A stretch of DNA of 63,819 bases, the filler included, from Pelomyxa schiedti (lineage: Eukaryota > Protista > Evosea), in the NCBI GenBank assembly GCA_020536535.1. It is 10 parts of 10 records of this genome, joined end to end, with 100 filler letters (N's around TTAATTAATTAA, not from the genome) between each part and the next. Parts side by side here need not be neighbours in the genome. Positions count along the whole stretch, not along the records: positions 35,668 to 53,829 come from JAHLWZ010000319.1; 9 more parts are not named here. One strand, 5' to 3'. The position numbers and the translations under genes are program-made. Position 1 is the stretch's first letter, and every line of letters begins with the position of its first letter. Below, piece after piece: positions 4,439 to 53,940 of this stretch. Under the pieces are notes generated by a model. It saw nothing but the letters and a program-made list of their open reading frames with translations, was not told the origin of the DNA and made no database searches.

Positions 4439-6233
4439 ATGGTGTTTTGCAAGCAGGGTTGGGGATGGGAGTGGCCACCGACGGCTAGTTGCACGACTAC
4501 TTTCTTCAGGAAGAATCCGTTCTTCAGCGTTCCGGTCTTTTTGGCGTCAGGAACATTCGCTGTTGTTCTCAGTAAAGTTATGATGGACGTCAGCTCCGAG
4601 GGAAGATATGGCGATGTATGACCTCTACTTTTGTTACCCCCTCCCCCCCCTTTTTTTTCCCCTTTCGCTTATGAATGAATGGTTTTTCCTCCTGTTTTGT
4701 TTGCAATCAGGTCCATGACTTTGAGAAGCCCTGGTTCTTGGACTGGTCTATGTTTGTGGGTATGATGTTCTGCCTCATTGGATTCTTTGGTGAGATGCTC
4801 TATCGTAAAGTTCGCCAACTGGAGGTAGATACACCATTTTCCACAATTTTCCTTTGTTTAACGGAGTATTTCAGAAATTTGTTATCACCCCAAAACTTTA
4901 TTGGGTCATCATTGCTCCAGCACTGTGTGATATGGTAAATGAAATACTCGTCCCTTTTGTTTCTAATATGATGCCAGATAAGCACTTTCATGATGAATGT
5001 CGGTCTTCTGTGGGTCCCAGCTTCTATTTGGCAGGTATTCATCTAATTGTTCCTTAGTAGCCCAACGAATTTAGATGTTGAGAGGCTCTATAATCATTTT
5101 TACAGCTATACTACGTATCACCTACCGTAAAACGAAGCTTTACCCATCAGGTATCCCCCTAGAATCAACACATTAACCTAATTATCTCAACGGCAGAGTG
5201 GGTCGGAGTCATTATTGTAACGATCTCCCTTGTTATTGTTGGTGGAGCCTGCATCAAAACACCAGGAGAGGGTGTACCAGCATCATCTGCGGGTTCCACA
5301 GGAGATAGTGGCACTCCAGCATGGGAGTTAGTGTTGGGCATGATCCTAGTTATTGCGGCACAATTTTTACAAGCCTTGCAAACCATTGTTGAAGAAACCC
5401 TGATGCATGATGTGAAGGCTCCTCCCACACTTATTGTAGGCATGGAGGGAGTGGTATGTAAGGAGGCCTGTCAGAAATCATCTAAATACCGTTTCTTCAG
5501 TGGGGATTTGTTCTTTGCACATTCATTTCTATGCCCATTGCACAGGTGCTTCCAGGGCCCGAAGGTGAAGGTTTACATGAGGTTTGAGGAAACAAAACCT
5601 TTTGCACTTTAACCCTTGTTATCAGGACTCCGTGGATTCGTTTATCATGTTGGGTAATAGTAATGAATTATTGGGTCTTGCAATTGGTTACGTCCTCGTC
5701 ATTTTGATATTTGTAAGTTCGCTGGGCACTTTTTCCATTCAGTAATATCACTAAAGAACCTTTACGGCATGATTATAACGGAAGTAACCAATGCCATGGT
5801 AAGGAACTTACTAGAGCCAATTAGGACCCTATTCATTTGGGTGACTGATATTTGTATGTAACATCTTTTCGTCATTCCATAACTTAGTCGGCTCCGAAAG
5901 TCATTTTCTATGTTATTGACGAACGCTATGGTGAGTCTCTCAACCTCTGGAGTATCCTCGAGGGATTTGGCTTCGTCGTTCTTGTCATCGGGTATAGAAA
6001 CCCTAGACTTACCAGTAACCTAACACCGCTCCCCCGAAAAAAGGTTCTGCATCTACAACAGCGTAATTAAGATACCGCACTTGCCCGGTCCACCTTCCGA
6101 CGAAGAGAAGGAGCCACTACTTTCCAAACAAGAGCCCTCACTACAGGGGAACGAAAAGGACGACCGCAGGTCTGACCCAGAAGACTTCCCGCCTCCCACG
6201 CGTACCGCTCCCGTTGCCGACAACGATGCATAG
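4439..6233 (+). CDS. SLC35F6: SLC35F6-like nucleotide-sugar/EamA-fold transporter, multi-exon
   Basis: Motifs HDFEKPWFLDWSMFVGMMFCL, IIAPALCD, QMLRGSIIIF and GMILVIAAQFLQALQTIVEE...VGMEG. The first exon is duplicated across the N-gap (4218 copy). Confidence 0.85.
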
Positions 6234-35567: not shown

Positions 35568-35669
35568 NNNNNNNNNNNNNNNNNNNNNNNNNNNNNNNNN
35601 NNNNNNNNNNNTTAATTAATTAANNNNNNNNNNNNNNNNNNNNNNNNNNNNNNNNNNNNNNNNNNNNGA

Positions 35670-38117
35670 ATGGCATCGAAGGAGTCGGAGAAGCAACGCA
35701 TTCTGCGCCTGTCACGTGTGGTGTGGGACCAGGTAATCGTGCCGTGGATATTGCGCCCGGCGCGCGCCGCCCGCTGCTGGAACCAGCCCCTGGACCCCGG
35801 CGCCGTGGCGTGCCTGCTGCGCACGGGCGAGGCGGTGTTCCCCCTCCTCGGGCTGTGCTGCCGCGCCGCGGCGCCCTCCCACCGCGACCGCAGCCAGCTG
35901 GTCAGCGGGCACTACCGCTCGCTCGAGGACGCCGCCGCCGCCCTGTGCCCCAAGTGCATCGCCTGGATTGTGGCATCCAAGGCCAGGGACAGGCGGGCGG
36001 CCGAGGGCGATGATGTGGTGGTGGCGGCGGTGCAGGGGGGAGAGAGGGAGAGGGAGAGGGAGCGGATTCGGGCCAAGGAGAAGGTGGCGGTGCTGACTGG
36101 GCTGTGCTGCGGGGGACACCTGGATGCCGCCAGGGCGTTTGTTGGCACCAATTGCGAGCGTTGGGTTGGGGTTGGGGTTGGGGTGGAGGAGGGGCCGAGC
36201 GACGAGGTGCCTTTGCTGTGGGCATCATCGCCACTGGGAGATACTGATGTTGAAACCAGAAGAGAGCGTGAGACAGGGACCGTGGTGTGTGACAGTTCAT
36301 TTATCAACTGCTATTATGATACTTTTTTTTTTTTTTTTTCACTTTGAGGCTATTCTGTTACTTAAGTGTTCCTAGCAACATCATACTCACAGTTTGAGTT
36401 TATTCAAGATTAACCTTGTGGTAAGGTTCCACCGTCAGTGCTGTATTGCAAGTCAGCTTTCAGTTTGGAAAACGAACCGTTCCTGCTTGAGGAATTTTGG
36501 AGTGCGAGGGGTGTGTTTAAACTCACAGAGGAAGTTTGTGCAAAGGGACACTTGGATGTTCTGAAGTGGATTCTGTCGAGCTTCTTCCACATCGATCAAA
36601 GCAATAAAATAATGCTAATTCCATTTCTGTTTGAAGCGTCACGAAGCGGGCACATTGACATTCTCAAGTGGCTGGTTTACACATTTGATTTGATGATCTT
36701 TTTCGATAGTAACTTGGCAGCAGCTTATTTCCAAGCAACTAACAGTGTTCATGACCTGAAGCGCTTTGTTGAAAGCTTTCCAGACTGGCAACCTTTTTTC
36801 GATGGGGTAAAACTTGCTAAGTCAGCTGGATTGTTCCAGGGCCCTTCAACTGATGAAATCATTGAGGTATGCCAGTGGCTCAAGGATCACTTCTCACTCC
36901 GTCGGCTGGATTTCATCAACTGGGACGAGCTGTCAAAGCTCAATACCGAAGTACTCAAGTGGGCACTCTCTGATCCCACCACTTCAACTGAGTTGAGTGA
37001 AGCGTGGAATTTATCTTGCTATGAACTGAGCGATGTGGAGCTGGCAAAGTGGTTCATTGAAGAAAAGGGAATAGCACCTGACTATTGTAACTTCGCTGAC
37101 GCTTGCGGAAGTGCCTCTGACAATTTGACATTTGTTGAGTGGCTCTCCAAGCAAGTTCCCACAGGTAGTGAAGAATTGCTGATGGCTCTAAAAACCGCAT
37201 TGGCCTGCCAAAATTATTCTATTTCAAAGTGGTTGGAGCAGCGCTTCATTGAAACCACCGGTGCAAGACCGAAACTTTCACTGATGGACCTCACAGAATT
37301 TCCCCGAAAACCACACGAGGACTGGCTTGATTGGCTGTTCACTCATTCAAGCTCGTGTGACATTGACCACAGTGAAACTGAGCTTGCCAAATTGATGGCT
37401 CAAAGTGGTCACTGCAGCTCTCCGTTTCAGTTGCATGTTGCTGTTTCCACTTGGAAGAAGTTTTCTTTGTTGTCACCCATCACTCACCACAACTTGCTCT
37501 TGGACCTGCTGGGTGAGGTTCTTCCCTTCGGTTCACTGTCCCAGGTCAAGGAAGTTTTCTCCCTGGGTCAATTCTCTCACACTGAAATGCAATGGTTCCT
37601 GGACCACTATCGTCTAAAATCCAGCAAGGTTGGAAAATGGTTGGTCCGGGAGTGTACCAAATTGTGCTTCAGTGATCCTCTTGCAGCGGTAACAGTGAAG
37701 AACTTTCCATCAGCTTGTAGATTGTTTGTTGACTCAATTCGAATCAACAAGCGGGGATTTACCAAGTGGCTTTTTAACACCTTCCACGTCACTCTGAAGG
37801 AAGTAAGTGTCTCTCACTTACTCTAACGCAATGTAACCACCAAAAACAATCAACAGGTCCTTTTTGAACTTTGCCGAGACCAAGCCCCCCTACGGGGAGT
37901 CGACTTGGCCACCTGGAAGCTTCTTCTGAGGCTCTTCCCCTCAGAAATCAACTGGGAGTTGCTCATCACGAACCCACACTTGCTGGCGATTGCCAGAGCC
38001 ACCCCTCTGCATGTTGCCCTTACCATCGAAAGAGTTCCAGGGGTTACAGTTGGTGACATCACTTCAGTTCTCCCCTGGTATCAGGTTTCTTTAACACCCC
38101 AAGACCATTTATTATGA
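35670..38117 (+). CDS. Divergent ankyrin-like repeat protein, member 3
   Basis: RVVWDQVIVPWIL N-terminus; GLCCGGHLDAA, VCAKGHLDVLKWI and ASRSGHIDILKWLV repeats. The C-terminal exon (VDLATWKLLLRLFP) follows an intron after HVTLKE. Confidence 0.75.
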
Positions 38118-38265
38118 AACCACTAATGGGCAAATAAATGGCTATTGACCAGTAAGTCAACTGTGCCACCACACCCGGGTGTTTACAGCCATTGAACCAA
38201 AGTTCAACCATTTCCAGAAGAAGAAGTTCGATAAAATCACAAACATAGGAGATCTGGTTGAAGAG

Positions 38266-39540
38266 ATGAAGTGCGGGGGGTTGGTGTTTTTATTGGGGTG
38301 TGCGTTGCTGGCTGAGTGCAGCTTTAATTGGTACTGACAACAACTCATCGTGTGGTTGGTGGTATTTTTCTCAAAGGTAATAACAATGAGGATGTCTTTT
38401 TGGACACTGGACACAGCCGACGACCTCACGGCAAATGTGACACTGGGCAATTTCATTTTTGATTCCAGTTCAGATGACTTTATTCTGCAAGGTTTGTAGT
38501 ACAAGTTCCAAAAGTACCTGACAGACTGCCTGAAATTTCCAAAGCGCACAAAAATGGACTCTATGTCTTGTACGACGTGGAGCCGCTATTGTACACTACA
38601 ACCAGTGATGGGCATTATGTCCTTCGTGATGATTATATTCAACAATGGGCGTCTGCAGTCTCGTCCAAGGTGAGATTCTTTTACTCTTTATTCTCATGAA
38701 TGAGGATTGCGAGTTCCGCGCTTGGTATGACGATGGAACAATCGTTGGATTTTTCATGGGTGACGAACTCACATGGGGTGGTCTTCCTTATGCCGACTTG
38801 GTGAAAACTGGTAATTATATTCTCATGGAATTTGAGTCTTACGACCGCCAGTGGACCTTGTTGCCGGCGACTTTCCTAGTGCCATCATATATTACAACGA
38901 GGCGTATGACCCTTTGACCCTTGTTTTATCTTATATGCACCTTATGGTTGAATAAAGATGGCTTCCCTTTGTTTATGATGTGGACATCTGGAGTGAACCA
39001 ATAGGATATGAAAATATCCCCGCCAATTTGACTTGGTGGGCGATTTGGCACCTTAGCATTTGGGCTAAATTTTAAGTAGGGTGTCCATGGATTACTATCC
39101 AGATTCCGGCAGCATTAAGGATGCCCAGAACATTTACACGAATTACATTTACACCCGGATGTCAGATAACCAGCGTGCTTTGTTTGTCCCACCATGCTAC
39201 GGGACTGTAAATGATCCAGTAAGGTATTGGGTGTTCCACCTTGTTTCCGCCTAAAAAGCTATTGGCAGATATTGTGGCAGCTCTGACTGCAACGCGGCAA
39301 TGATAGATTGGGCATGGAATTCATATGACTGGATCAGCGCCGACGACCGCATGATTGGGTACACAAACTTACTCCTCAATATAACTTTGCTCATCAAACA
39401 ACACTAGGTTGAACCCGTGGCATTGGCACTGCTACGACTCGGGGCCCGAGTCTCATTACGAGAATGGCGCCGCGTGCATGGACGACGTGCGATCCAACTG
39501 GGAACAAATAACGGCCAAATTGGTACCACCCGCGCTGTAG
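38266..39540 (+). CDS. Secreted glycoside-hydrolase-like (TIM-barrel) protein, multi-exon
   Basis: Signal-peptide-like MKCGGLVFLLGCALLAEC; GFFMGDELTW, IYYNEAY, LFVPPCYG and DDRMIG-LNPWHW. Stop at 39538-39540. Confidence 0.55.
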
Positions 39541-39827
39541 CTGTAGCTGTTTCTGACCACGATCAACGATCCAGAATCCTAAAGCAAAAATCCGGCCGAT
39601 AATTTTCGAAGAAAAGGGAGGAAAACAAAAAAACCTCGCACAAGAAATTAACCAACGACAACAAGTTTAGTGTCACACCGGCAGGAAGTAGTAGGAGCGT
39701 GGGAGGGGAAAAAGAGGAGAAAACAAAAAGAACACACAACTAACAGCTGTACTAAAACAACACACAAATAATTGGCACTAGCGGCGGTCAGGAGGTGTAA
39801 AGCAAAAACCCATAATACAAGTGTGGG

Positions 39828-41915
39828 ATGTCACGCGATCTAGAACTGAGAGTTGGCAACAAGTACCGTCTGGGGCCGAAAATTGGCGGGGGTGCTTTTG
39901 GCGTCATTTACCAAGGAGTCAACGTCACAAACGGCGATGAGTGTGCTGTGAGTTTTTCTTTTCTTTTTTTTTTTTTTTTTTTTTTACGGGGAAATTTAGG
40001 TGACTTACCTTATATTTAGATTAAACTTGAACCTGTGAAATCCAAGCATCCACAGTTGTTCTTTGAGTACAAAGTGTACAAAATTCTTCAAGGTGGAGTG
40101 GGTATTCCCCAAGTTCTGTGGTTTGGAGTCGAGGGGGATTACAATGTAATGGTAATGGACTTGCTTGGGCCAAGCCTTGAAGACTTATTCCATTACTGTG
40201 GACAACATTTCTCACTGAAGGTAGTCCTTGGTTTCAACTGCACACTTCTAACTTTTTCAGACCGTACTGATGCTGGCAGATCAATTGTTAAGAAGAATAG
40301 GCAAGTTTTTCCCTTTTTCCAATCCATTTGTAATTTTCCTTGATAGAATATATTCACTCCAAGAACTTTATCCATCGTGATATTAAGCCAGGTATAAGCA
40401 CTCATTTTTTCGTTTCTTTCACAATATAAAGACAATTTCCTTATGGGGCTTGGCAGTCGTTCCACACAAGCCTATGTTATAGATTTCGGACTGGCAAAAA
40501 AATACCGTGATTCTAAGACTCATCAACATATCCAGTACAGGGAAAATAAGGTTAATTCAAATGCCAGTTTATTTCTTGAACTAATGAAGTCAGAGCTTAA
40601 CTGGAACGGCACGCTATGCCAGTGGTAAGATTTATAATTCTTTCCTCCTTATGAACCCTATTCCAGCCAATACACACCTTGGGATTGAGCAAAGCCGTAG
40701 GGATGATCTTGAATCACTTGGCTATGTCCTTATGTACTTCTGCAGGGGATCTCTTCCATGGCAAGGACTGAAGGTAATCCAATGTCCCACTCTTCTCGGG
40801 CTTAGTACTTGTTAGGCTGACACCAAAAGACAAAAATATGACAAAATATCTGAAAAAAAACTTGCAACAAGTGTGGAGCAGCTTTGCAAAGGCTTCCCTT
40901 CTGAGTTTGCCACCTTTCTGACATATTGCAAGGTAATCACCAAGTGAGATTTTCGTGTTTAACACTTCTAGTCTCTCCATTTTGAAGACAAACCTGACTA
41001 TGCTTACCTGCGCAAATTACTTAGAAACCTCTTTATTAAAGAGGGCTTCAAGTAAATTTCCAATAAATTTATATTATTAGGGATAATAATTGTAATTTAA
41101 ATTATTATCCATAGATCACTGCATGGTTAACATACCAACCATAGGTATGATGCAGTTTATGACTGGACTTTGAAAATGCAGTCCCAGCACCCTAACCCGG
41201 ACAGGAGGTTGGCTCAACCAGATGTAGTGCTTTGACTGTATCAATGACTTTTCTAACCCTTCACAGGCAAGGGAGGCACGCCCAAGTGCGGAAGGACCAC
41301 CAAGGAGCAATGGTCTTACAGGCCCTGGGGGAAATACCCGCATGTATACTGAATATGCGCCATGTATGGTCAAAATACCCAACATTTTATTACATTTAAC
41401 ACTGGAACATTGTACCAGCACCCAATGTAATGACTCCAGCCTCCCCCCAGAGTCTAACTCCGATGCGTAATCCGAGTGGAACCACACCTATGTCAGGGCT
41501 TCCTGGGCTAACAGGTCCTTCAAACACAGGCCTCAATATGGCCAACACACCCGCAACAACCACTGCAACAACCAGCACATCCACATCAGCCAACAACAAC
41601 ATCACCACACAATTACCCCCACCACCATCACACACACCACCCCAGGGCAGGGCATTCTACACACCAACCCAGTACATACCAACACACAACGGCACAAACC
41701 CACAAAACAACAACATGGGCCCAGTCACCACACAGCAACAAACCACACCATCACAAACCCCCAATGTAACCACACTTGGTGTGGATGGCTCATCAACAAA
41801 CACCACATCAAGTGGTGTTGGGGTCTCGGCTGCACCACAGACCAGGACATCCTCAGCTCCCCCACATGGCCAAAGCCGTTTTGCTGGCTTTCTCAGACAC
41901 CACAACAATTCCTGA
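39828..41915 (+). CDS. CK1: Casein kinase 1 (delta/epsilon-like), multi-exon, Thr/Asn/Pro-rich tail
   Basis: [82 protein letters not shown] and [11 protein letters not shown]. Confidence 0.97.
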
Positions 41916-42032
41916 CATAGCCCAAACCCTATCAACAAAATCCCACTGTAGAAACTTTTTTTTTTACTGGCTCATGGGCCATACAATACTTACAACATAA
42001 CTCCAAAGCCAACAAGGGTGCAAAAGGGGTAA

Positions 42033-42071
42033 CCAGCAAAAAACACTACCCTTGGTAGTGTTTTTTGCTGG
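42033..42071. repeat. Perfect 18-bp stem / 3-nt loop hairpin (second full copy at 53522-53560, right arm only at 42763-42780)
   Basis: CCAGCAAAAAACACTACC-ctt-GGTAGTGTTTTTTGCTGG. The loop is aac in the second copy. Confidence 0.9.
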
Positions 42072-42289
42072 AGNNNNNNNNNNNNNNNNNNNNNNNNNNN
42101 NNNNNNNNNNNNNNNNNNNNNNNNNNNNNNNNNNNNNNNNNNNNNNNNNNNNNNNNNNNNNNNNNNNNNNNNNACATACATTATTACACTGATGACAATT
42201 ACAACTGAATGGTGCTGCTCCCCTATTACACTCACTCACTCACTCACTCACTCCACCATGCAGTTGGTTGGTCAAAGGAAAAAAAATAA

Positions 42290-42382
42290 AAAACCGTGGT
42301 TCGGGAGGAACCGTCGACGGTGATGGGAATCGAACCCAGGACCTCGGCAAGCTTTTAAGTGGGCCCTCCTCAGCTACGCTAG
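42290..42382 (-). ncRNA. tRNA-like Pol III element (degenerate tRNA or SINE head)
   Basis: On the minus strand: A-box-like TAGCGTAGCTG and B-box GGTTCGATTCC, followed by a T-run. I could not fold a canonical cloverleaf. Confidence 0.4.
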
Positions 42383-42550
42383 GAAATCCCCCCCTGAACT
42401 CAACTTAGCAGAGGCATATGGGGACATGACTTGTTGGGTCATTATTTTAAATAATTAATTAAAAATAATATAAAATTGAATTATTTTGGCTCCTAACGAC
42501 GTTGCACAGTTACACAGTCACGCAACACTCACTTGGTGTGCATTCCCAAG

Positions 42551-42621
42551 CCCTGGTTGCGTAGTCGTCACGGCGTTAGTGGCATGACAAAGATGTTGCT
42601 GGTTCGATTCTTGGCAAAACC

Positions 42622-42706
<85 letters not shown>
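42551..42706 (+). ncRNA. tRNA-like element followed by ~80-nt poly-T
   Basis: TGCGTAGTCG (A-box-like) and GGTTCGATTC (B-box, 42601-42610), then poly-T at 42625-42706. The stems are degenerate. Confidence 0.3.
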
Positions 42707-42943
42707 CAGGGTCTCAGAGCAGATAGAGAGAATCGATCAATCCCCTGAGCCAGAGAAGAGAGGGTAGTGTTTTTTGCTGGAGACATACATTATTACACTG
42801 ATGACAATTACAACTGAATGGTGCTGCTCCCCTATTACACTCACTCACTCACTCACTCACTCCACCATGCAGTTGGTTGGTCAAAGGAAAAAAAATAAAA
42901 AACTGTGGGTAGAGAGGCGTGTTCTGGGAGTTGATCGCAGGAC

Positions 42944-45803
42944 CAAGGATGGCCGAACCTTGATTCGAAACCGAATCTTTTCTACTGTTTTTGGCCTTCG
43001 TAGAGCCTTCAGTTAGGGGTAGATTTATTCGGGTTCAATTTTTATTTTTCTCTTGTAAAATCGTTCAGTTGGTACGTAGCAACGGGACCGCCATGTCGGG
43101 AGATGAAAATGAGGCGGAGCACCCATTCCTTTCGCATATAGGATGTGGCACCAATGCACATGATGGTTGTGCCGATCTGCAGCTTGGCCGACACGGTGCC
43201 AAACACCACACCATTGTAGCACCTCAACAAACACAATCTGTACCTGTGGTTCAGGGGCACCATTTTTCCCCACCAGCTCTTGAACAACCTCTTCCGGTTA
43301 TTAGTTCCTCTCCTTGTGCTCAGATAACTTTTGTGGAGTGCAACAACCATTCTGTAGGACCACTTCTTCCACCTCCGCCTTCAATACATCAAATAGTCCT
43401 TCCAGTTTGTTCCTCCCATCCTCATATTCCAGTCTTACCCTCACAGATAACAAAGCCCAACAAAACTTCACAACCATCAGCATTCAAAAAACACTTCACC
43501 AAGCAATCTGTCCCAACAAAAGGTGAGCAACGCTGAGCTTGTAACTTTTTGCAAGAAAGACCTGTCTATACAACAAAGTGGTACTACTTCTCACTTGAAA
43601 GAGCATCTTGGTGTATGCAGTATCTTTTCAAAAACCCTTGAAGGTAAAGTCTTCTGCTTTTTCTAATAAATAATCTGGTTATTAGGGGAGCAATTAATTG
43701 CAGCTAAAATAGTCAATAGACAAAGAGCAGAAGAACCTGGGTATTGATCAAAGGAATGTTGTCTTTTCGTAAGGTTGAGGTGCCAGAAATGTGGGGAGTT
43801 GGCTTTCAACCAAAAGGTAGGCATGTTATGAAAAGTAAAGCCCAAGCTCTAGAGCAAGTGCTTCTTGAGTATGTTTTAACCATAATTTAAATAAAAAAAT
43901 TAATGAATAAACAGATGCATACAAAGTATGACAATCTTTCTGTTGTCTTGATGAAGGACATTTGGTGTTCCTCTACTGGGGAGTCCTTATTATTGTTTAG
44001 GGTCCGCTATATGGATTCTAGCTTTGTCTGTCACCAATTTACCCCAATAGTTGTTGCTCTAAGTGAACGCCACACTGCCAAATACATAGCTACCATCACA
44101 CAGGTATTCCTTAAAACCACTTTCTTTCTTGTTTTTTTAATTAGTATTTAGAATTTGATAAAAAAGTGGAAGTGGAATGTTGTTGCTGAGGTATGTATTA
44201 TTTTGAAATTGAAAACAAAAAAACAACATACTGAAGGTTACTGATGGTGCTTCCAACATGAGCAGTGCAGCACTACAAACTCATTCAATGTGGTTACACT
44301 GCTATGCACACAGATTGAATTTATGTATGGAGGCAGCATTACCAACTGAATTTATGAGTAAGGTATACTATTCACTCATTCATCACATGAGATTCTTTCT
44401 TCTCTTTACTTAGATACGATATATTGTGACTAAGATACAGCGTTCATCAAAGTGTGCTGCTATCCTCAAAAGCTATTGTACAGCTGATAATCCATACCAC
44501 CAGCCAAAACCAGTATAACTACCTTCATTAGTGCCTGTAACTTATGACAAGTAGGACCACAAAATACGCTGGTTGGGTGCTTACTTGATGGTCTCCTCCT
44601 TATCAAAGCTAGCCCACTAGAAATATTCTTTCCCCATAAAATAACTCCCCTCAGGTTACGAATTCCAATTACTTCCGCACTGGGGAATGGGCACAGTGGG
44701 TTCAATTTGAAGCGCAATTGTGAATTGTCTACCTCTGAATGGAATGACTTAGAAAGGCTGAGGGATGTGTTAGCCCTTCCATATGATGCATGTCGCTATG
44801 TGTTGCTCTCCATTTAATTTACCAATAAAATCAGTGTTCTTTGGCATTGCAATCTGATAATATGACCCTAGCAACAGCACATCAAGCAATTCAAGCATTA
44901 CAGAGAGGACTCAGTACAGAGCTCTGCTCTTATGCAAATGCAGATCAGTAATTTTATTTCCCTTCTTTATGTTTTTACTGAATCCCTCCTAGAGATATAG
45001 CCGAGAAGACTCGCAAAATATTACTTGAAGAACTTGAGACAAGGTTTTCTATGCAGGAAACTACACCTATTAATAGCAAGATAAAACTGGCAATGTGTTT
45101 AGATCCCCACACCAAAAACCTTATCTTGTGTTCTGAGGATCTAAAGCAGGTTCCTCCCAAAACCACATTTTCCCTTCTTACAGCTAATGACCACCAGGAA
45201 TGCTACCGGGAATTACATAAACATTTCCAGGCACTGAATAACAGTGGAGATGACAATGCTGTCTTGCAAATCCCTACACAAGTTCCAGAACAGCCAGCTC
45301 AGAACTTTGTAGACATGATAAAACAGGTAGACCTCACAACCCCTTCCTCATTAATATTATTGCAGAATGCTCAAGCTGCCACAACAGAAAGGGCCAGGCA
45401 GCTTGCTACTTGGAATTTAAGCAAAGAGGTGAGCACCTGCTCAGCTGACACACGAGATTGGTACCAAGCCAGGAAACTGGATAATGTACCTGGCCTGTTG
45501 GCCCTGTCCCAGCAAGTACTTGTAATTCCCCCCACTACCTGCACAGTGGAGAGAGAAGGGAAGACCGCAGCAGACTTATGGAATTTTCAGACTGCCCGCT
45601 TTTTGCCAAGTATTGTCTGTATGTTGCTCTTCTTGCATGAAAATGTTCTGGACATTAAGGAACTTCCATTGTAACACAGTAACCACAATAAGAAAACAAG
45701 AAATGTCTAGACATTCTATTTCTAAATCGAATCGAAGGTGTGATTCGAACCAACCTTCGTTTACGAAGGTTACGTCGATTTTTTCAGTGTTCGGCCATCC
45801 TTG
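42944..45803 (+). mobile_element. hAT DNA transposon, full length but transposase inactivated
   Basis: Perfect 15-bp TIRs CAAGGATGGCCGAAC (42944-42958) and GTTCGGCCATCCTTG (45789-45803). 8-bp TSD cgcaggac/cccacgac. BED finger CNFC...HLKEH, KDIW, VTDGASNM, CYAHRLNL and C-terminal dimerisation domain TVERE. A TGA and a frameshift occur near 43534-43550. Confidence 0.9.
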
Positions 45804-45894
45804 CCCACGACCATCTCTTCGGCAAAAAACCCATCTTTGAAGTTGGGCATTAGTTTTCATTTAACTTGGAAACTTTTTTTTCTCCTTTTTAAAT

Positions 45895-48670
45895 ACTAGG
45901 CAGAGTAGTGCAGCAGTTCTTGGAGCTCGGACATGTTTTCAGTGCAGAGTGTTTGAGGTTTAAAGCTTGTAGTCTTAGCATTCCACAAGTCAGCAGCTGT
46001 TTTACCCTGTCGTTCAACAGTACAATTAGTTGCTGAGATAACTAAGATTTCTTGTGTCAAAGCCAGCACAGCCTAGACATTCTCTAAGGTTCTAGCTTTA
46101 TACCATGGCTGTGTCTTCAGCGACTCAGGCAACTTTTGCCACAAAGTTATTTGTTCCACTGCCACCCTTTGTCCAGGTTTTTGAGCACCCTGCAAAAATT
46201 ATCAGATTTAAAGAAAAGGAGACAATACCCATTTCATTTGATCCACAAAGTTGAGGGAGGCATCAGGAATGTGTGGTGCTTTTTCTGCTTCCAGGATCAT
46301 GGTCACAACATCGCGGACTTAAGATTCAAAGTCTGCTCTAAGGCTTGTAACAATTCTAAAAAGGGTGTTAAATAAGCAATGGAGAACAAATTTCAACCTG
46401 TTTCAATTCCTCAGAGCAGAAAACTAGGTCTTTTGTATGAGGATCTAAACATAAGGCAGCTTTTGTAATTCAATTCAGATCAGTATTAACACTCAAAGAA
46501 AACCGTTGCTGAATTTCATGTAATATATTTTGGCGGCTCATTCCTCACAGTTCCACTGGCAGAGACAAGTCACAACAGAAGAAAAAGGTAACACAACTTT
46601 AAAATTCTTGGGGGAAAGTATATGGGTTGCGAAAGGCCTTGCTGTAAGGCTTGTATTGCCTGAAATGCCAAAGCTAAAGTCATCTTATTAGACTGTAAAT
46701 GTAAAGCTACCTTGTAAGAGTGAAAAAATGAAAACCAATAAAAGAAAACCTCATAAGGACCCTGTAACAACAGTGTTAAAGCCTCAAGATAATTCCACTC
46801 TGAAGTGGACAGTTATTTATGCTTTAGTGTAAAACCACTGTTAGGATCAGCAAGAGCGGAAGTAATCGGGATTCGTAGCCTTAAATGAGTCAATGAAGAC
46901 TTAAAAGTATACAAAAATACTTTGACATAGATGACAACATTAAGTATGTTCCCAACCAACGAATTCTGTGATTCTAAACAAGTAATTAACTATTACAAAA
47001 GTAAGGAACTCAAAGCATACAGGCTTTCGTTGGTGGTAGGGTTCTACTTCTGTGCAATATTGTTTCAAGATCTCAATTCACATAGGTGAGCGTCGAATCT
47101 TACTGACAAGGGCATTAATCTATTTGAATATTAAAGGTGACAAAAAAAAATTATCTAACCTTTGCAAGAAAAGGCTATGGTAATGTTGCTTGCATACAAA
47201 GGTTTAAACGGTGAGCATAGCAATGAACCCAAAGGTGGTTCAGCTGTCGAACCGATGACTCCATATTGGAAGCACCATCAGTAACCTTAACCTTATTACC
47301 TTGGATAAATCAAACTTTAAAGTGATTAAAGACCGCAATAACTTTCCATTGCCATTTAGTAATGATTGCCTGGCGAGTATGTGAAGGAAAAAGCTTTGTA
47401 ATTAAACAAACCTTAGTACAGTCCAAAATATTGATGGAGTATGTTTTTGGGGTAAGTTTACAACCTCCGGAGTAAATTGTTTACATAGAAAATTGTCATC
47501 CAGATAGCGGACTCGAAAAAGTAGTAACGATGCACCAGTTGAGAAAGTCCAACTGTCTTTCATGAGGATCACAGACAACTTGTCATACTTGCTATGCATC
47601 TAAAAAAAAATCAGTTTTCCCAATGGAAGGGTATTTAACATGTGTCAAGAGCTCTTGTTCAAGGTGTTGGGCTTGAGTTCTCATTGTCTCTCTGCTTTTC
47701 GGAGTGAAACCATTACCCCACATTTCAGGAATATCTGCTTTAGAAAAAGGCAGCATCCCCTTAATCAACAGTAGCGCTGTTCCTCCAATTCTTGTCTGTC
47801 TCTTTAAAGAACAGTAAATAAGAGTAAGATCTTACTAATACCTAGAACGAGTTATAAGAAAATTGTTCAAGGTTAAGTTCAGGATCTTTAGGACACATAA
47901 ACCCAAAGAAACCAATCCCAAAGTTATCATTTTGTCACCTTTTTTTTGTATGAGATAAGTAAACACTTTTGGTACCTGTAGGTGACAGGTTCACAGTTCT
48001 CCAGATGTAACTTTAGATGTGTAGTTGTACCAGATGATGAACTGAGAGGGCATAACTGCAGAATTTGCATTTCCAACGTGGCTTTTCATTTTGATAGATC
48101 TTGGTGAAGTGTTCTGGGTATGGCGATGGCTCAGATGTCCAGTGGTTTTTTCGTCTAGAAGCAGGTCTCATTGCTACATTGGTAGAAGTAGGATGTGAAG
48201 CAGCTGTCTCTCTTTCTTCCCCAGGGTATGTGTGGTGCACCTCTGGATAGTGTAACTTAGGTTGAGTTGTTAAACAAAAAAAAAAACCAAGGTAATGCAA
48301 GTTATTGTCTACTGACGATTGTACTGTGGTTGTTGATGACATACCCTCTCTAAGTGAAATATGTGATCACACAATGTCAGGTGTAGTGCTGAGGGTGGTC
48401 CTGACGTAACAAAAAGTGGAGGAGGAGGTGTTAAAGTTTGTATGGATGTGAGACAAGGTCTGGGTGTAAAAGCCAAAGGTGAACCTCCACGATGGCGTTG
48501 GGTACTTTGTGATTGAGATGTGCAATGGTCGGGAACAGCCGAAGCGGTTGTCACAAAAAACGGGTGTCCTTCATCCTCACGCCCACCAGATTTCGCACCC
48601 GAAAAGCGCTTTCGTAGTCAAAAAAAAAAAAATCGATTTGTTCCAACATCGAATATTCGTCCGCCCTTTG
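45895..48670 (-). mobile_element. Second, diverged hAT element in opposite orientation, degenerate and 3' truncated
   Basis: KPRWKCKFC (BED), MKDSWTFSTGASLLLFRVRY, VTDGASNM...CYAHRLNL and NCTVERQGKTAADLWN parallel the first element. Many stops. Only a weak TIR-like sequence at 48655-48670. Confidence 0.8.
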
Positions 48671-48748
48671 GTGTGGGGTAGATTAGTGAACACCCTTCTT
48701 TCTTTCTCTGGTGGGACTGGATGCAAAAGAAAATGCTATTTTTTTTTC

Positions 48749-50002
48749 TTATAGGGACTTGGACACAATTTGGGAGATGTTTGCGTGGTGGACTTCCAAC
48801 AACAAAACGAGTGTATAAGAGCTTTGCTCCCTTACTTCTATGGCATTGCCTGTTTCTACAAACAGGTATCCAGCTTCAGCTACAATTTGATGCCATGCAG
48901 GGAGGCGGCTCACCACTTGTACTGGCCTCGTACTGTTGTAAATGTCCCAGATTTCTAGGTTGTGTGTATCAGACCTATCAACAAGGAAGTTTGAGGGACT
49001 GAGTTGCCAGAGACCATCAGCAGGGCCTGAAATGAAGTTTGGAGCACCATATATTTCGTACACATCCCCAGCTGACCAATCTTCATTGAGCATCCTTATA
49101 ACGTAGCTTTCCGTGTTTGCTTTGGAGAAAATATAGCCATTGGCAAAGTAATAGTCATCTGCTGTGTACCAGGTTTTCACAGTCTTCACAACTATAGCTG
49201 GGGCCCTTCCAGTCGCATCCAGATCCAGAAGATATAACAGCGGTGGGGCATCCTTGGCAAGTTTAACAATAAGAGCAGCTTGGTCCAGAGCTGTAGAATT
49301 GAAGAAGAAGGAGGCTTCAAGAAATACAGCAGGAAGCTCCAGTGTGTTCCCCTTCAACAAAAAAGATGTACCATGCTCCGTGATAGTGTCGTTTCCAAGG
49401 TTCCCAAGAGTAATCTTTTTCACGTTCCAGTCATATAGCAGAATCCACCTTGAATTAGCCCCATATACCACAGTATTTAAAGACTCCCTCAGAACCTCCC
49501 ATTGGTGCCCAGATATAAGATCAGAAACCCAGAAGTTACGCGTACCGTTTTCAGAGCGCTGTCGATGCACTCCCACAATTGAATTCGGCTCCACTGCAGC
49601 CAAGCTGTCATACGGCGCCGCCGCGTTGATTCGTTGCGGTCCCACAATCCCAAGAGTGCGGCCGACTCCAAACGTCACCAACTTCACCGGGGTCCGCGCC
49701 ATCCTGCCCCTGCTCATCGACACGCAGAAAAATTTAGTGCCGGCGCACATGAAGCCGTTCCACAGCGTTCTCATCAAGAATCCGTTGTCAGCAACAGCTC
49801 TGGTGAACGGGTACCCCACGCCGCACCGCGGGACGGCGGCGGCGAGCAGCGCGAGCATCTGGGACCGCAGAGCACCGAAGGCAGCCGCATAGGTCGTCGG
49901 CGCAACCTGCCGCGCCTTATTCTTCTGCTTCTTGTTTCGCTTGGACCTCCCCTGCTCGACTCTCGGCTTCTTCTCCGGGGGTGGTTGCGCCGCGTAGCTC
50001 AT
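48749..50002 (-). CDS. PRCG-header family protein with beta-rich (propeller-like) C-terminus, intronless
   Basis: 417-aa ORF with ALRSQMLALLAAAVPRCG...LMRTLWN...VTFGVGRTLGIV, followed by short beta-strand-like segments. Confidence 0.75.
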   Translation of the reverse strand: MSYAAQPPPEKKPRVEQGRSKRNKKQKNKARQVAPTTYAAAFGALRSQMLALLAAAVPRCGVGYPFTRAVADNGFLMRTLWNGFMCAGTKFFCVSMSRGRMARTPVKLVTFGVGRTLGIVGPQRINAAAPYDSLAAVEPNSIVGVHRQRSENGTRNFWVSDLISGHQWEVLRESLNTVVYGANSRWILLYDWNVKKITLGNLGNDTITEHGTSFLLKGNTLELPAVFLEASFFFNSTALDQAALIVKLAKDAPPLLYLLDLDATGRAPAIVVKTVKTWYTADDYYFANGYIFSKANTESYVIRMLNEDWSAGDVYEIYGAPNFISGPADGLWQLSPSNFLVDRSDTHNLEIWDIYNSTRPVQVVSRLPAWHQIVAEAGYLFVETGNAIEVREQSSYTLVLLLEVHHANISQIVSKSL

Positions 50003-50267
50003 TTCTAGTTGTTAATTGCGTGGGGTGACAGATTGCCAATTGGTTTTATTATTTTTTTTTTTAATAAGGAAAAACTATTTGAACGAGTTAATAACACATG
50101 CAGGTGTCCCTGTCCGAGTTTATGATTCGCCTTTTTTAAGGTACGTTCTTTCTTTTTGAGTTAACCGATGGCTTGCTTATTTAGGCCCTCGAGGGTGTCA
50201 CATGGAAGCCGATTATGCTTATGATTTGCTGAACAAAATAATCAACGGACCGGAACGCTGTAATTTT

Positions 50268-50287
50268 CGTTATCGTCGCTCAGGATC
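50268..50287. other. Conserved 20-nt non-coding motif CGTTATCGTCGCTCAGGATC (exact copy at 59214-59233)
   Basis: An exact 20-mer on two scaffolds, in the same orientation upstream of two PRCG-header genes. Confidence 0.7.
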
Positions 50288-50546
50288 GGCGGTCTGGTGT
50301 TTTTTTTATACATGGAATGACTGTCTCCTTTCAATAAGCTTCACAGTTCATTCCTCAGTAAATTTGATGCCGACACTCTCCTTACTCTTAGTATTGTTTT
50401 CTCATGGAAATGGCTAGCGGAATCAAACAATCCCCCAGGCACTTGACCGAAACTACCAATAACAATCTCAAGGAAACAGCACCACAACAAAGAAAAAAGG
50501 AAGAATCACCGGTTTTTTTGATCTTTCTTCATAACCACGCGGTGTG

Positions 50547-52347
50547 ATGGACGATTTGTTTAACGGCGAAGGTGGTGATTGTGGGAGATGTGAGCACTGC
50601 AATAGGGGTAGTCTCAGGTGTCAAAATCTCATAGGAAAGTTTCGTTTGTAATGTAAGTCTGACGCGACACGACATGACACGCTTCCCCACACAGATCTGT
50701 GCCGAGATCCGCCCATGTTGCAATCAAAACTGAGCGTGTGCAGTGTGTGCGCCTGCGGTGGTGCCGACGTCTGGATCTGCGTAACCTGTGGGGAGTCTTT
50801 TTGCGCTCCGAGTACATATGACCATCTCGGTTCCCACGTGGCTGCTACGATGACCGAAGCGGGCGGCGTTCACGCGATTTATTGTTTGCCGTCAACTATG
50901 TACCAGGAGCCTGTGTATTGCCACTTCCGCTGCTTCATCTGCTGCAAAAGCGTGAACTGTGAGGTACCTATCTGGCTAATGTGGCTGAAATCCGTACCTT
51001 GTGGTCCCTATTTGTGCGCTGTGGCACCTGTGTCACGATGTTTCTCTTAGGTATTGGAGAGTATGAGTTATGTACTTTTGGATGTTGTGCCAAATTGGAA
51101 ACCACTTCCCCAAAAACTGGATGGAGACATGGAATATGATGAAGCCAAATTCCGCGAGTCTCTTGCTCCTAGAACCAGTGTAGGGGAAACCTCATGCCAG
51201 GTTTTTCATTCACCTTCTGGCATTTTTTTGTTCTCATTCAAACAAGAATTTCATGGCAGAACCAAAACATACTCTTATTTGGATGACAGGTCAGGCTCCT
51301 GTTCCTGGCCCTTTGGGACAGCCTGAATTCATCTTGAAGGACAGAAAGTCTTATGAAAACAGACAGGTGGTTCGGAAGTCACTAAGTTTTTGTATCCAGT
51401 CACTTGGCATACAACCACAAACCTTATTGTATGCATCAAATATGGGAAAGGGTGCTGATGTGTTTGGCGTCATTCCTGCAACCTCACTTGAATTCTCAAC
51501 ACACAATGAGGGTATTTTGTGCATTTTCTATCAGCACTCCTCTTTTCCTCACTCTACGTAGTTGTTGTTATAGGCGCCCATTGTGATAGCGTGTCTTGCC
51601 CTGGTGCCGATGATAATGGCAGTGGTATCCATACTGTTTCCCTCTTCATTGTTCACACCGTTTTAAAGGTAGTGCTGCTGTTCTACAGATCGCTGATGCT
51701 GTTGTTCGTATGAGAATACGTAAGGTAGTTCTCAGCCTGTAGTATATCCTTCTTCAACAGTTTGGCGTAGCGTGCCACCTTGATTGTATTTTTTGACCAA
51801 GAGGAGTGTGGACTCGTGGGAAGTCGTTACTTTGCCAGGTAGGAGGACATTTTGTTGTTATTCCAACTTTTCATGAAGATTTTTGCATAAAGTGGAATCA
51901 TTGTCCAAAATCCACAGTGTTCACACCGTTGATATGATTGGGTACTCTTTTTCTCTTTTTTTTGGATATTTTTAATTGGTTGAACCAAGCTACAACTATA
52001 AGTGGCAGATAGCTCTGTTCAACCCACACCCGGGTCTTATAGAGATGTATACACACACCTATGCGGAGCAGGACCCAAGACTTAAAGTTTTACCCCACAC
52101 ACTCGCCGGAATTTCTGATTTCCTCAGCTTTCCTGGTGTGCCATTATTCCCTTTTCAACACTGGGTGTCTCACACCCCTCCAGATTTTGTATGCACTGGC
52201 CTTGGAGAGCCCAAGCTTGACTCCGGCACCGTCTCCAATCCCAACCACCACAAGCCAACTGACACCATAGAGACCATTGACTTTGACTACCTGCGTGCCA
52301 ACATTTCCCTTGTGCTAGCTGTGGTGTCCTTCCTTCTCACACCCTGA
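50547..52347 (+). CDS. ZnF-UBP-like zinc finger fused to M28 family metallopeptidase, multi-exon
   Basis: N-terminus CEH...CSVC...WICVTCGESFC...HLGSH...HAI...CFIC. M28 motifs VVIGAHCDS, PGADDNGSG, FDQEECGLVGS, VDMIG, SDFLSF and HHKPTDT. Confidence 0.75.
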
Positions 52348-52530
52348 AGATTTTGTACGAGATTTTATCTGTTGTAACCTCAAAAAAAACCCATATGAAC
52401 ACATTGCACCTCTTTAAGTCCCATTTGCCAACTAACATTGTACTGGATAGAGCACAGGCAGTACCAACATCTCATTAAAATCTTAAATTTTCGGCCTGTG
52501 AACCAACCACAAATACTAATAGATTGGTGA

Positions 52531-52728
52531 TTGATGAGCGGCGGAGCGGTGCCTACGTCGTCAGGGAATGCAGCGGCCACCACAACAACTACATCGACGA
52601 CGACCACCACGTCCTCTTCGGCGGTTGCGAGGCCCCCGCCGCCGAAATTAATTATGGCACGGACGGTGGGAAAGCCAAAAAAGAGGAGGGGCTCCGTGTG
52701 GCTGGGAAAAGTCCCAAAATACCTACTG
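52531..52728 (+). CDS. 5' fragment of an unidentified gene cut by an N-gap
   Basis: GC-rich open frame MSGGAVPTSS...MARTVGKPKKRRGSVWLGKVPKYLL. Confidence 0.35.
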
Positions 52729-52829
52729 GNNNNNNNNNNNNNNNNNNNNNNNNNNNNNNNNNNNNNNNNNNNNNNNNNNNNNNNNNNNNNNNNNNNNNNN
52801 NNNNNNNNNNNNNNNNNNNNNNNNNNNNN

Positions 52830-53290
52830 TAACAGGTCCTTCAAACACAGGCCTCAATATGGCCAACACACCCGCAACAACCACTGCAACAACCAGCACA
52901 TCCACATCAGCCAACAACAACATCACCACACAATTACCCCCACCACCATCGCACACACCACCCCAGGGCAGGGCATTCTACACACCAACCCAGTACATAC
53001 CAACACACAATGGCACAAACCCACAAAACAACAACATGGGCCCAGTCACCACACAGCAACAAACCACACCATCACAAACCCCCAATGTAACCACACTTGG
53101 TGTGGATGGCTCTTCAACAAACACCACATCAAGTGGTGTTGGGGTCTCAGCTGCACCACAGACCAGGACATCCTCAGCTCCCCCACATGGCCAAAGTCGT
53201 TTTGCTGGCTTTCTCAGACACCACAACAATTCCTGACTAACCCAAACCCTATCAACAAAATCCCACTGTAGAAACTTTTTTTTTTTACTG
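52830..53290 (+). repeat. Second copy (allele or paralog) of the CK1 last exon and 3' flank
   Basis: Near-identical to about 41509-41970. Five coding SNPs were seen, all synonymous. Confidence 0.9.
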
Positions 53291-53940
53291 TGGTCCATAC
53301 AATACTGACTACATAACTCCAAATGATTGGATTTGTGGACCTGAGGTTGAAAACATTTTCATAGCTGTAGTCTTTAGGGGTAGCAGGATCTGCTTAGAAA
53401 AAGCCCACTACAAGCAAAGAAAATGAGATACAACCTGTAGCCTTGTTGTATGCAACACAAAGCCTTTTTGCAGAGTCCGCCAGCACTTTGGGTAATAAAA
53501 ACAAGCAAGCAAAAGGGGCAACCAGCAAAAAACACTACCAACGGTAGTGTTTTTTGCTGGAGACATTACAACTGAAGGGTGCTGCTCCCCTATTACACTC
53601 ACTCCACCATGCAGTTGGTTGATCAAAGGGAAAAAAAAAAACCCTGGGGCGAGAGGCGTGTTCTGGGAGTTGATCCCAGGACCATATAGCAATTCGTTAA
53701 CGAATTGTCCTGTTTTACCAGGAAATCCCCTCTGAGGCAACTTAACTGGGGAAAAGAGACATGGAACGTTGCGCATTTTGTGTTTGTTTTGTTGGGCTCA
53801 CTAAATTTCATTTTTTCGGTCAATCACGCNNNNNNNNNNNNNNNNNNNNNNNNNNNNNNNNNNNNNNNNNNNNTTAATTAATTAANNNNNNNNNNNNNNN
53901 NNNNNNNNNNNNNNNNNNNNNNNNNNNNNTTGCTTCTATT

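Follow-up and report, generated by a model that had tools for sequence, protein, structure and literature searches.

The window, a 63,819-nucleotide (nt) stretch of DNA of the anaerobic amoeba Pelomyxa schiedti (GenBank assembly GCA_020536535.1), consists of ten parts joined end to end, with positions 35,668 to 53,829 coming from record JAHLWZ010000319.1. Within that part, on the plus strand at 50547-52347, lies a gene of 10 exons and 9 GT-AG introns of 40-87 nt (Table 1), which would encode a zinc finger resembling those of the zf-UBP (ZnF-UBP) type, a linker and a metallopeptidase domain of the M28 family. The gene model was built from the three-frame translation of the plus strand over 50400-52400, with exon phases checked at each junction; phases agree at all of them. 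Exon lengths of 61, 269, 150, 265, 63, 56, 68, 63, 146 and 164 nt add up to 1305 nt, or 435 codons including the TGA at 52345-52347, so that the predicted protein, beginning with the ATG at 50547, has 434 residues (a length obtained by arithmetic). Searches were made with single exons or with two deposited proteins of the family (P0001 and P0003, described below) as queries.

Table 1. Features of the finger-peptidase gene; positions count along the whole window.
Feature	Position	Strand	Evidence
Transcript start and 27-nt 5' leader	50520-50546	+	RNA contig X1 record 1
Exon 1: start codon, C-x-H-C (C 50589, H 50595, C 50598)	50547-50607	+	3' splice predicted
Intron 1, 87 nt, GT..AG	50608-50694	+	predicted; in-frame TAA at 50649
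Exon 2: zf-UBP-like finger core	50695-50963	+	PF02148, Atlas, USP33 and paralogue alignments; RNA contigs over 50520-50901 and 50814-50966
Intron 2, 87 nt, GT..AG	50964-51050	+	predicted from frames; same junction in P0001
Exon 3: 50-residue part of linker, poorly conserved	51051-51200	+	open frame in phase with exons 2 and 4; in P0001
Intron 3, phase 0	51201-51246	+	predicted
Exon 4: end of linker, N-terminal part of M28 fold	51247-51511	+	aligns with P0003 282-360 and L001 5352-5603
Intron 4, GT..AG	51512-51561	+	spliced in RNA
Exon 5: G-A-H-C-D-S, G-A-D-D-N-G-S-G	51562-51624	+	Pfam M28 piece; aligned to 2ek8, 6hc6
Exon 6	51669-51724	+	flanking introns 51625-51668 and 51725-51770 spliced in two RNA runs of one sample
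Exon 7: D-Q-E-E-C-G-L-V-G-S	51771-51838	+	Pfam, RNA, solved-structure alignment
Exon 8: V-D-M-I-G	51879-51941	+	flanking introns 51839-51878 and 51942-51989 spliced in RNA
Exon 9	51990-52135	+	RNA contig X2 record 5
Intron 9, 48 nt, in frame, GT..AG	52136-52183	+	splice in X2 record 5, 146 letters on shorter side
Exon 10: N-P-N-H-H-K-P-T-D, stop TGA	52184-52347	+	RNA; P0001; 2ek8/6hc6 alignment
Finger C-x-H	50589-50597	+	
Finger C-x2-C	50739-50750	+	
Finger W-x-C-x2-C	50772-50789	+	
Finger C	50802	+	
Finger H-x3-H	50823-50837	+	
Finger H	50871	+	
Finger C-x2-C (last)	50931-50942	+	
M28 ligand H	51579-51581	+	
M28 bridging ligand D	51609-51611	+	
M28 catalytic Glu (general base)	51801-51803	+	first of E-E pair, 51801-51806
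M28 ligand E	51804-51806	+	second of E-E pair
M28 ligand D	51931-51933	+	
M28 ligand H	52249-52251	+	

Four public runs of one study contain the locus. Two of these, X1 and X2, are single-cell RNA-seq of one sample; X3, from which the assembly was probably made, contains the complete locus with identical sequence; in X4 the copy is diverged. Both halves of the gene are expressed, with RNA contigs over the finger and over the peptidase. Contig X1 record 1 covers 50520-50901 collinearly with the DNA and is preceded by the loose letters GTACATGGG(A), which we take to be the 3' end of the Smart-seq2 template-switch oligo. Since these letters stand directly before 50520, the transcript starts at about that position, and the ATG at 50547 is its first AUG. 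The Smart-seq2 protocol is cited in the P. schiedti genome paper (PMC8887013). Six introns (51512-51561, 51625-51668, 51725-51770, 51839-51878, 51942-51989 and 52136-52183, all GT..AG) are removed in RNA contigs, and the contigs over 51264-51420 and 51406-51510 are collinear with the DNA. The initial annotation of this region, made from the sequence alone, had described short GT-AG introns, as these six bear out, but had read straight through the last of them, the in-frame intron 9; this has no counterpart intron sequence in P0001, and the metagenomic relative described below has extra in-frame letters at that place. Further upstream, no RNA contig crosses exon 3 or its junctions with exons 2 and 4, and we infer these two junctions and that between exons 1 and 2, the three 5' splice junctions of the gene, from reading frames and comparison. 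Contig X2 record 4, which ends at 50966, continues past exon 2 with G-T-A plus one unaligned letter. A direct, in-frame splice from exon 2 to exon 4 was ruled out, the G-T-A after 50963 fitting either exon 3 (G-T-A-T) or an unspliced transcript.

In the public databases the gene is represented by KAH3764040.1 (P0001), 'M28 family peptidase' of Pelomyxa schiedti, which is identical to the window exons. That model starts at Met 50898, inside the finger, the larger part of which is thus lost, and leaves out 28 residues of exon 4 (51369-51452) which two RNA contigs keep; since those contigs are collinear with the DNA there, the skipped residues are exonic. It joins exons 2, 3 and 4 at the junctions placed here, but because the P. 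schiedti gene models come from Augustus, PASA and EVM (PMC8887013) it is not independent RNA evidence for them.

When the last coding stretch was compared by HMMER with 1.84 billion cluster representatives, just three proteins were found: P0001 itself, P0002 and P0003. P0003 is KAH3759029.1, a 559-residue paralogue from the same genome (locus L004), with C-P-H at residues 24-26, the finger at 106-183 and the M28 domain at 352-546; at L004 one open reading frame (ORF) covers the C-P-H together with the first half of the finger. Neither this record nor KAH3764040.1 names the finger, and the precomputed Pfam list gives M28 only. P0002 is an ORF fragment on a 627-kb metagenome contig (ENA ERZ21831265, locus L001). 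There, an ORF at 4741-5328 starts M-L-E-D-V-F and carries C-V-H-C, C-K-R-C, W-A-C-L-S-C, H-A-V-E-H, another His and C-L-Q-C, followed by a linker and a donor (G-A-G/G-T-A-T-C-T) at 5314; with the AG at 5350-5351 this gives a 38-nt intron before the first M28 exon. A phase-0 intron lies twelve residues before the conserved Trp of T-L-x-W-x-x-G, at the same place and in the same phase at all three loci, and the order finger-linker-M28, the strand and the spacing are likewise alike. That finger and peptidase are fused in one gene, as first proposed, appears well supported, mainly by this comparison. The linker is poorly conserved and comes to some 80 residues, rather than the 55 or so of the initial annotation; BLASTP did not confirm a match between exon 3 and the paralogue linker that had been noticed by eye. 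The paralogue carries an intron of its own inside the finger, after K-H-A-N (L004 5431-5480), which is absent from the window gene, and the window intron between C-x-H and C-x2-C is absent from both the paralogue and L001; introns have thus been gained or lost within the family.

It might be objected that the model wrongly merges neighbouring genes, one for a small finger protein and one for a stand-alone M28 peptidase that starts from the ATG at 51253. Such an ATG is indeed present, the prokaryotic M28 relatives are stand-alone proteins of 235-315 residues, and the RNA contigs leave 50967-51263 uncovered. The arrangement common to the three loci speaks against a merger, however, as does the L001 finger-linker ORF, which ends 38 nt before the M28 exon and so leaves no space for a terminator and promoter. 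Met 51253, the only candidate start for a free-standing peptidase, is Arg or Lys in the other two members, and in the published predicted model, too, the end of exon 2 is connected with exons 3 and 4. We consider the two-gene arrangement almost certainly wrong, and continue with a single fused gene.

Some indication of the source of the metagenomic relative comes from elsewhere on its contig, where a bacterial-type endonuclease III gene lies in a eukaryotic setting at 552-1244 on the minus strand of L001. Once its own cluster and a fragment 99% identical to it are set aside, its best named relative is a protein of Mastigamoeba balamuthi (55%), whose 'm51a1' gene prefix occurs in the M. balamuthi genome paper; the next matches are metagenomic, and the named ones among them bacterial (Chloroflexota, Actinomycetota) at about 45-50%. 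This looks like an old bacterial transfer common to the Archamoebae, and on the weak ground of this single gene the L001 organism is probably archamoebal.

The copy in run X4, compared over 50300-52500, is a second copy of the locus diverged by 5-10% from the window; it could belong to a second haplotype or to a sister strain in the sample, or be a recent duplicate. All 11 of its indels inside the gene fall in predicted or confirmed introns and none in exons, introns making up 496 of the 1801 nt; four of the 11 lie in the predicted intron 50964-51050 and none in exon 3, and a twelfth lies in the 3' untranslated region. Similarity is kept over 50546-50600 and lost over 50601-50685, and the sequence before 50546, upstream of the ATG, is unrelated to that of the window.

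The C-x-H of the finger is placed in a separate first exon with a predicted splice to the finger core. Over its first 19 residues the predicted protein aligns with the N-terminus of that from L001 (E 9e-4, in a single comparison), and use of the donor at 50608 (G/G-T-A-G-T-C), which resembles the confirmed donors at 51725 and 51839, gives a spacing of 17 residues between C-x-H-C and C-x2-C, as in L001. On the strength of the L001 match, the equal spacing and the pattern of conservation in X4, exon 1 has been taken as coding. A frame-keeping intron of 51 nt with its donor at 50644 was rejected, as its donor is poorer and its spacing 29 residues, not 17; the strong GTAAGT at 50653 is downstream of the stop codon and does not rescue the frame. 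The retention of intron 1 (50608-50694) in RNA could be due to incomplete splicing in a single cell or to regulated intron retention; it is taken here as incomplete splicing, with the exon 1-2 junction provisional. Alternatively, the protein could begin at Met 50715 without the C-x-H, exon 1 then being an upstream ORF in the leader and the finger holding two zinc sites instead of three. In favour of this, the USP5 finger functions with a single zinc, and RNA over 50520-50901 is represented by one contig, which is unspliced and still contains the TAA at 50649. Such a start would leave the last C-x2-C, which is kept in all three members, without zinc partners; against it also count the N-terminal and C-x-H-C match to L001 with its equal spacing, the C-P-H in the paralogue, and the X4 conservation of exactly 50546-50600 and not the next 85 nt. 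It is judged unlikely, and the longer protein with C-x-H is retained.

In the peptidase half, P0001 matches Pfam M28 (PF04389) with 89.4 bits and E 3.2e-25, over positions 7-192 of the 193 in the profile and against a threshold of 21.3, while single exons alone gave 19.4 and 17.5 bits. The motifs G-A-H-C-D-S, G-A-D-D, Q-E-E, D-M-I-G and H-H-K-P-T-D align residue for residue with those of the solved structures 2ek8 and 6hc6, so that all five metal ligands listed in the initial annotation are in place; these and the Glu-Glu pair are kept in all three family members, in which N-P-N-H-H is also invariant. Judged by its motifs, the domain appears intact for catalysis. Among solved structures it is closest to bacterial aminopeptidases, namely 2ek8 from Aneurinibacillus (E 3.6e-12), YwaD from Bacillus subtilis (6hc6, 1e-11) and the Streptomyces griseus enzyme (1cp7, 4.5e-10), a range of about 4e-12 to 5e-10; the nearest NCBIfam model, far under its cut-off, is the aminopeptidase LapA, known from Legionella. 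These bacterial enzymes and the P. schiedti domain have the five metal ligands and the catalytic Glu in common, but the former are secreted enzymes that lack a zinc finger and in many cases contain a PA domain, and identity to the window protein is low. The C-terminal third is strongly diverged; an all-library HMMER search with it returned family members alone. The N-terminus is acidic and contains no hydrophobic run, which agrees with the absence of a signal peptide noted earlier (an absence judged by eye), and a hydrophobic stretch near the C-terminus is not a membrane anchor, since it aligns with the last helix of YwaD. The lack of a signal peptide, together with the reducing compartment that a Cys-rich zinc finger needs, points to a cytosolic location.

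The Cys/His pattern by which the finger was first recognised is present at every position (Table 1). The ligands follow the canonical zf-UBP order at 12 of 12 positions in L001 and, if exon 1 is used, in the window gene, and at 11 of 12 in the paralogue; their assignment to three zinc sites follows that in HDAC6 structures. Compared with Pfam, exon 2 alone matches zf-UBP (PF02148) and nothing else (E 1.1e-3), as had been predicted, but its 19.7 bits fall below the gathering threshold of 22.7. Because scores remain under that threshold, the finger is called zf-UBP-like here and not a member of PF02148. Atlas protein-language-model features place exon 2 at 0.94 to zf-UBP clusters, with 202 of 256 features shared, and 16 of its 30 nearest clusters carry zf-UBP alone. 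Among solved structures the best match to exon 2 by itself is the USP33 ZnF-UBP (E 0.11); a profile of the three family fingers also puts USP33 first (E 2.3e-3), both halves matching it in order, with weak further matches to USP20, to three distinct HDAC6 finger sequences (19 entries) and to USP49, and six of the 12 distinct PDB sequences matched are zf-UBP domains. The window finger aligns with that of the paralogue at E 5.7e-6. It is best regarded as a diverged zf-UBP-like module, in which zinc binding is suggested by the conserved ligands. Another cross-braced finger of similar Cys/His spacing (HIT, FYVE/PHD or RING-like), not homologous to zf-UBP, has to be weighed against this: all members fall under the Pfam cut-off, with no match for L001, in the paralogue FYVE_CARP1-2 scores level with zf-UBP, the weak profile matches include HIT1, C2H2 fingers and a FYVE-RING protein, and structure models are of low confidence. 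The sole Pfam match of the window finger, the Atlas neighbourhood, the six zf-UBP domains among the PDB sequences, the ordered match to USP33 and the twelve ligand positions in canonical order count the other way and make an unrelated finger distinctly unlikely; a zf-UBP-like identity is assumed in what follows.

Whether such a finger would bind ubiquitin depends on a few residues. Several ZnF-UBP fingers bind free Gly-Gly tails in a pocket made of a key Arg and up to five aromatic residues; R84A in USP16 abolishes ubiquitin binding, and the fingers of USP13, USP20, USP22, USP33 and USP39 do not bind ubiquitin (PMC13493902). The Arg position of C-G-R reads C-A-P in the window, which upholds the caveat of the initial annotation that this Arg is replaced, and C-S-I in the paralogue; in L001 it is interrupted by an insertion and is not alignable. 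The Tyr position of W-C-Y-x-C reads C-F-I-C in the window, C-F-A-C in the paralogue and C-L-Q-C in L001, with Tyr absent from all three. The residues that define the ubiquitin-tail-binding subclass, the key Arg and the pocket Tyr, are thus missing from the window finger, and with the Arg lost in the window and paralogue and the Tyr in all three members, canonical ubiquitin-tail binding is unlikely. The ubiquitin-tail-binding fingers of HDAC6, USP5, USP16 and BRAP2 have the three-zinc ligand pattern in common with the window finger, which differs from them in the replaced Arg and Tyr, in an insertion of six residues before the last His and in scoring below the Pfam threshold. Closer are the ZnF-UBP domains of USP33 and USP20 (PDB 2uzg and 6kcz), the best solved matches to the finger both alone and as a family profile, which have the same Cys/His order and likewise no C-G-R Arg; the similarity is weak (E 2e-3 at best), and in animals those fingers precede a USP cysteine-protease domain, whereas here, in an amoeba, the partner is a zinc metallopeptidase.

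The proposal originally made for this gene was of a peptidase aimed at the C-termini of ubiquitin or ubiquitin-like proteins (Ubl), in which the finger would bind the free tail and the M28 domain trim or inactivate it or an associated substrate. M28 peptidases comprise both aminopeptidases and carboxypeptidases. The finger is of zf-UBP type, some examples of which bind Gly-Gly tails (PMC13493902), and the lack of a signal peptide would leave the protein in the same compartment as ubiquitin. The proposal is nevertheless hard to reconcile with the replacement of the key Arg in the window and paralogue (it cannot be placed in L001) and of the pocket Tyr in all three, or with the failure of the nearest solved fingers, those of USP33 and USP20, to bind ubiquitin; nor does similarity suggest clipping of C-terminal tails, since the nearest peptidases are aminopeptidases. 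It must be regarded as very doubtful, and a targeting module with some other ligand is more likely. A related idea, that the finger captures a free C-terminus (of Ubl or another tail, in a remodelled pocket) and passes the protein on to the attached zinc exopeptidase, the whole having been assembled in the Archamoebae from a bacterial-type peptidase and a eukaryotic finger, seems highly improbable; if true, this would be an enzyme of the ubiquitin system built on a metallo-exopeptidase and not on a cysteine or JAMM isopeptidase.

The family itself is small, with two P. schiedti paralogues and one gene from an organism that is uncultured and probably archamoebal. When the full paralogue was used in a word search, it returned itself and four weak stand-alone M28 proteins, with no further fusion, and one with the L001 finger exon returned nothing. 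In the Atlas, the paralogue lies nearest to clusters of prokaryotic stand-alone M28 proteins, at <=0.81, to be read as leads only, and these protein searches gave no M. balamuthi or Entamoeba orthologue. A scan of Joint Genome Institute (JGI) metagenome contigs for family patterns gave seven loci, none a member: five, including two duplicate pairs, match the patterns by chance in short ORFs, and the other two are on contigs of high guanine-plus-cytosine content (61% and 70%) that are probably bacterial. A full-text literature search by domain names found no description of a zf-UBP and M28 fusion, the papers that join ZnF-UBP and aminopeptidase being reviews on USPs and on HDACs; this, like the three members obtained from the large protein searches, is in keeping with the original statement that no described fusion of this kind was known. 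Independent fusions of the two domains may exist elsewhere, beyond these searches.

Several neighbouring features of the window were also recorded. The gene diverges from an ORF on the minus strand, 48749-50002 (417 residues, no Pfam family), with an upstream region of about 520 nt in common. Near the N-terminus of an unspliced ORF at 36438-37826 (462 residues) there are ankyrin repeats (Ank_4, E 1.8e-7), the remainder of the ORF being without a family, and the 207-residue product of 45051-45674 contains a hAT-family C-terminal dimerisation domain (E 1.9e-4, just over the Pfam cut-off) and is probably a transposase remnant or a domesticated piece. Beyond the gene, after 100 N (52731-52830), the segment 52831-53323 repeats 41510-42007 at 96.8% identity, giving a second copy of the end of a Thr/Asn/Gln-rich ORF (41430-41915 and 52859-53236); it could be a real dispersed duplicate or an effect of RNA-based scaffolding. 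There is also a direct repeat of 135 nt with 97% identity (42174-42308 and 42783-42917, starts 609 nt apart).

Taken as a whole, it is rather probable that the locus is one expressed gene joining a zf-UBP-like finger through a linker of about 80 residues to an intact M28 domain, with the finger serving as a non-canonical tethering or regulatory module. The protein of about 434 residues would presumably be cytosolic; its bacterial-type M28 domain may be an active exopeptidase, probably an aminopeptidase, which the finger would bring to a partner protein or a free peptide end. As the key Arg and pocket Tyr are absent, the finger would do so without the canonical Gly-Gly carboxylate pocket of ubiquitin binding. 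A number of observations weigh against this account. No RNA contig of X1 or X2 bridges 50967-51263, so that, of the RNA link expected in the initial annotation between 50715-50963 and 51560-52347, splicing is seen for the peptidase introns, and a single transcript from finger to peptidase is not directly demonstrated. Intron 1 is retained, with its in-frame TAA at 50649, in the sole RNA contig covering 50608-50694, so that some transcripts at least cannot encode the protein with C-x-H. BLASTP detects no similarity between the exon 3 linker and that of the paralogue. The finger scores under the zf-UBP gathering threshold in all three members (16.9 bits in the paralogue, no Pfam match in L001), the paralogue has no second His in H-x3-H, and AlphaFold2 models of the finger are of very low confidence, with a predicted local distance difference test (pLDDT) score of 55.5 for exon 2 alone and 41.0 with three sequences. 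Finally, the sequence does not decide between aminopeptidase and carboxypeptidase activity, the former being probable.

The public annotation can now be corrected, 28 peptidase residues and the greater part of the finger being missing from one record. This very small family is restricted to anaerobic amoebae that have received little study, and may best be described as a well-founded curiosity, in which known parts have been newly combined. Fingers of the zf-UBP type occur as accessory domains in USP deubiquitinases, in HDAC6 and in BRAP2; the metallo-exopeptidase of this conserved fusion would be a new partner for them, and the fusion would provide a natural case of a finger of the non-ubiquitin-binding type beside an easily assayed enzyme.

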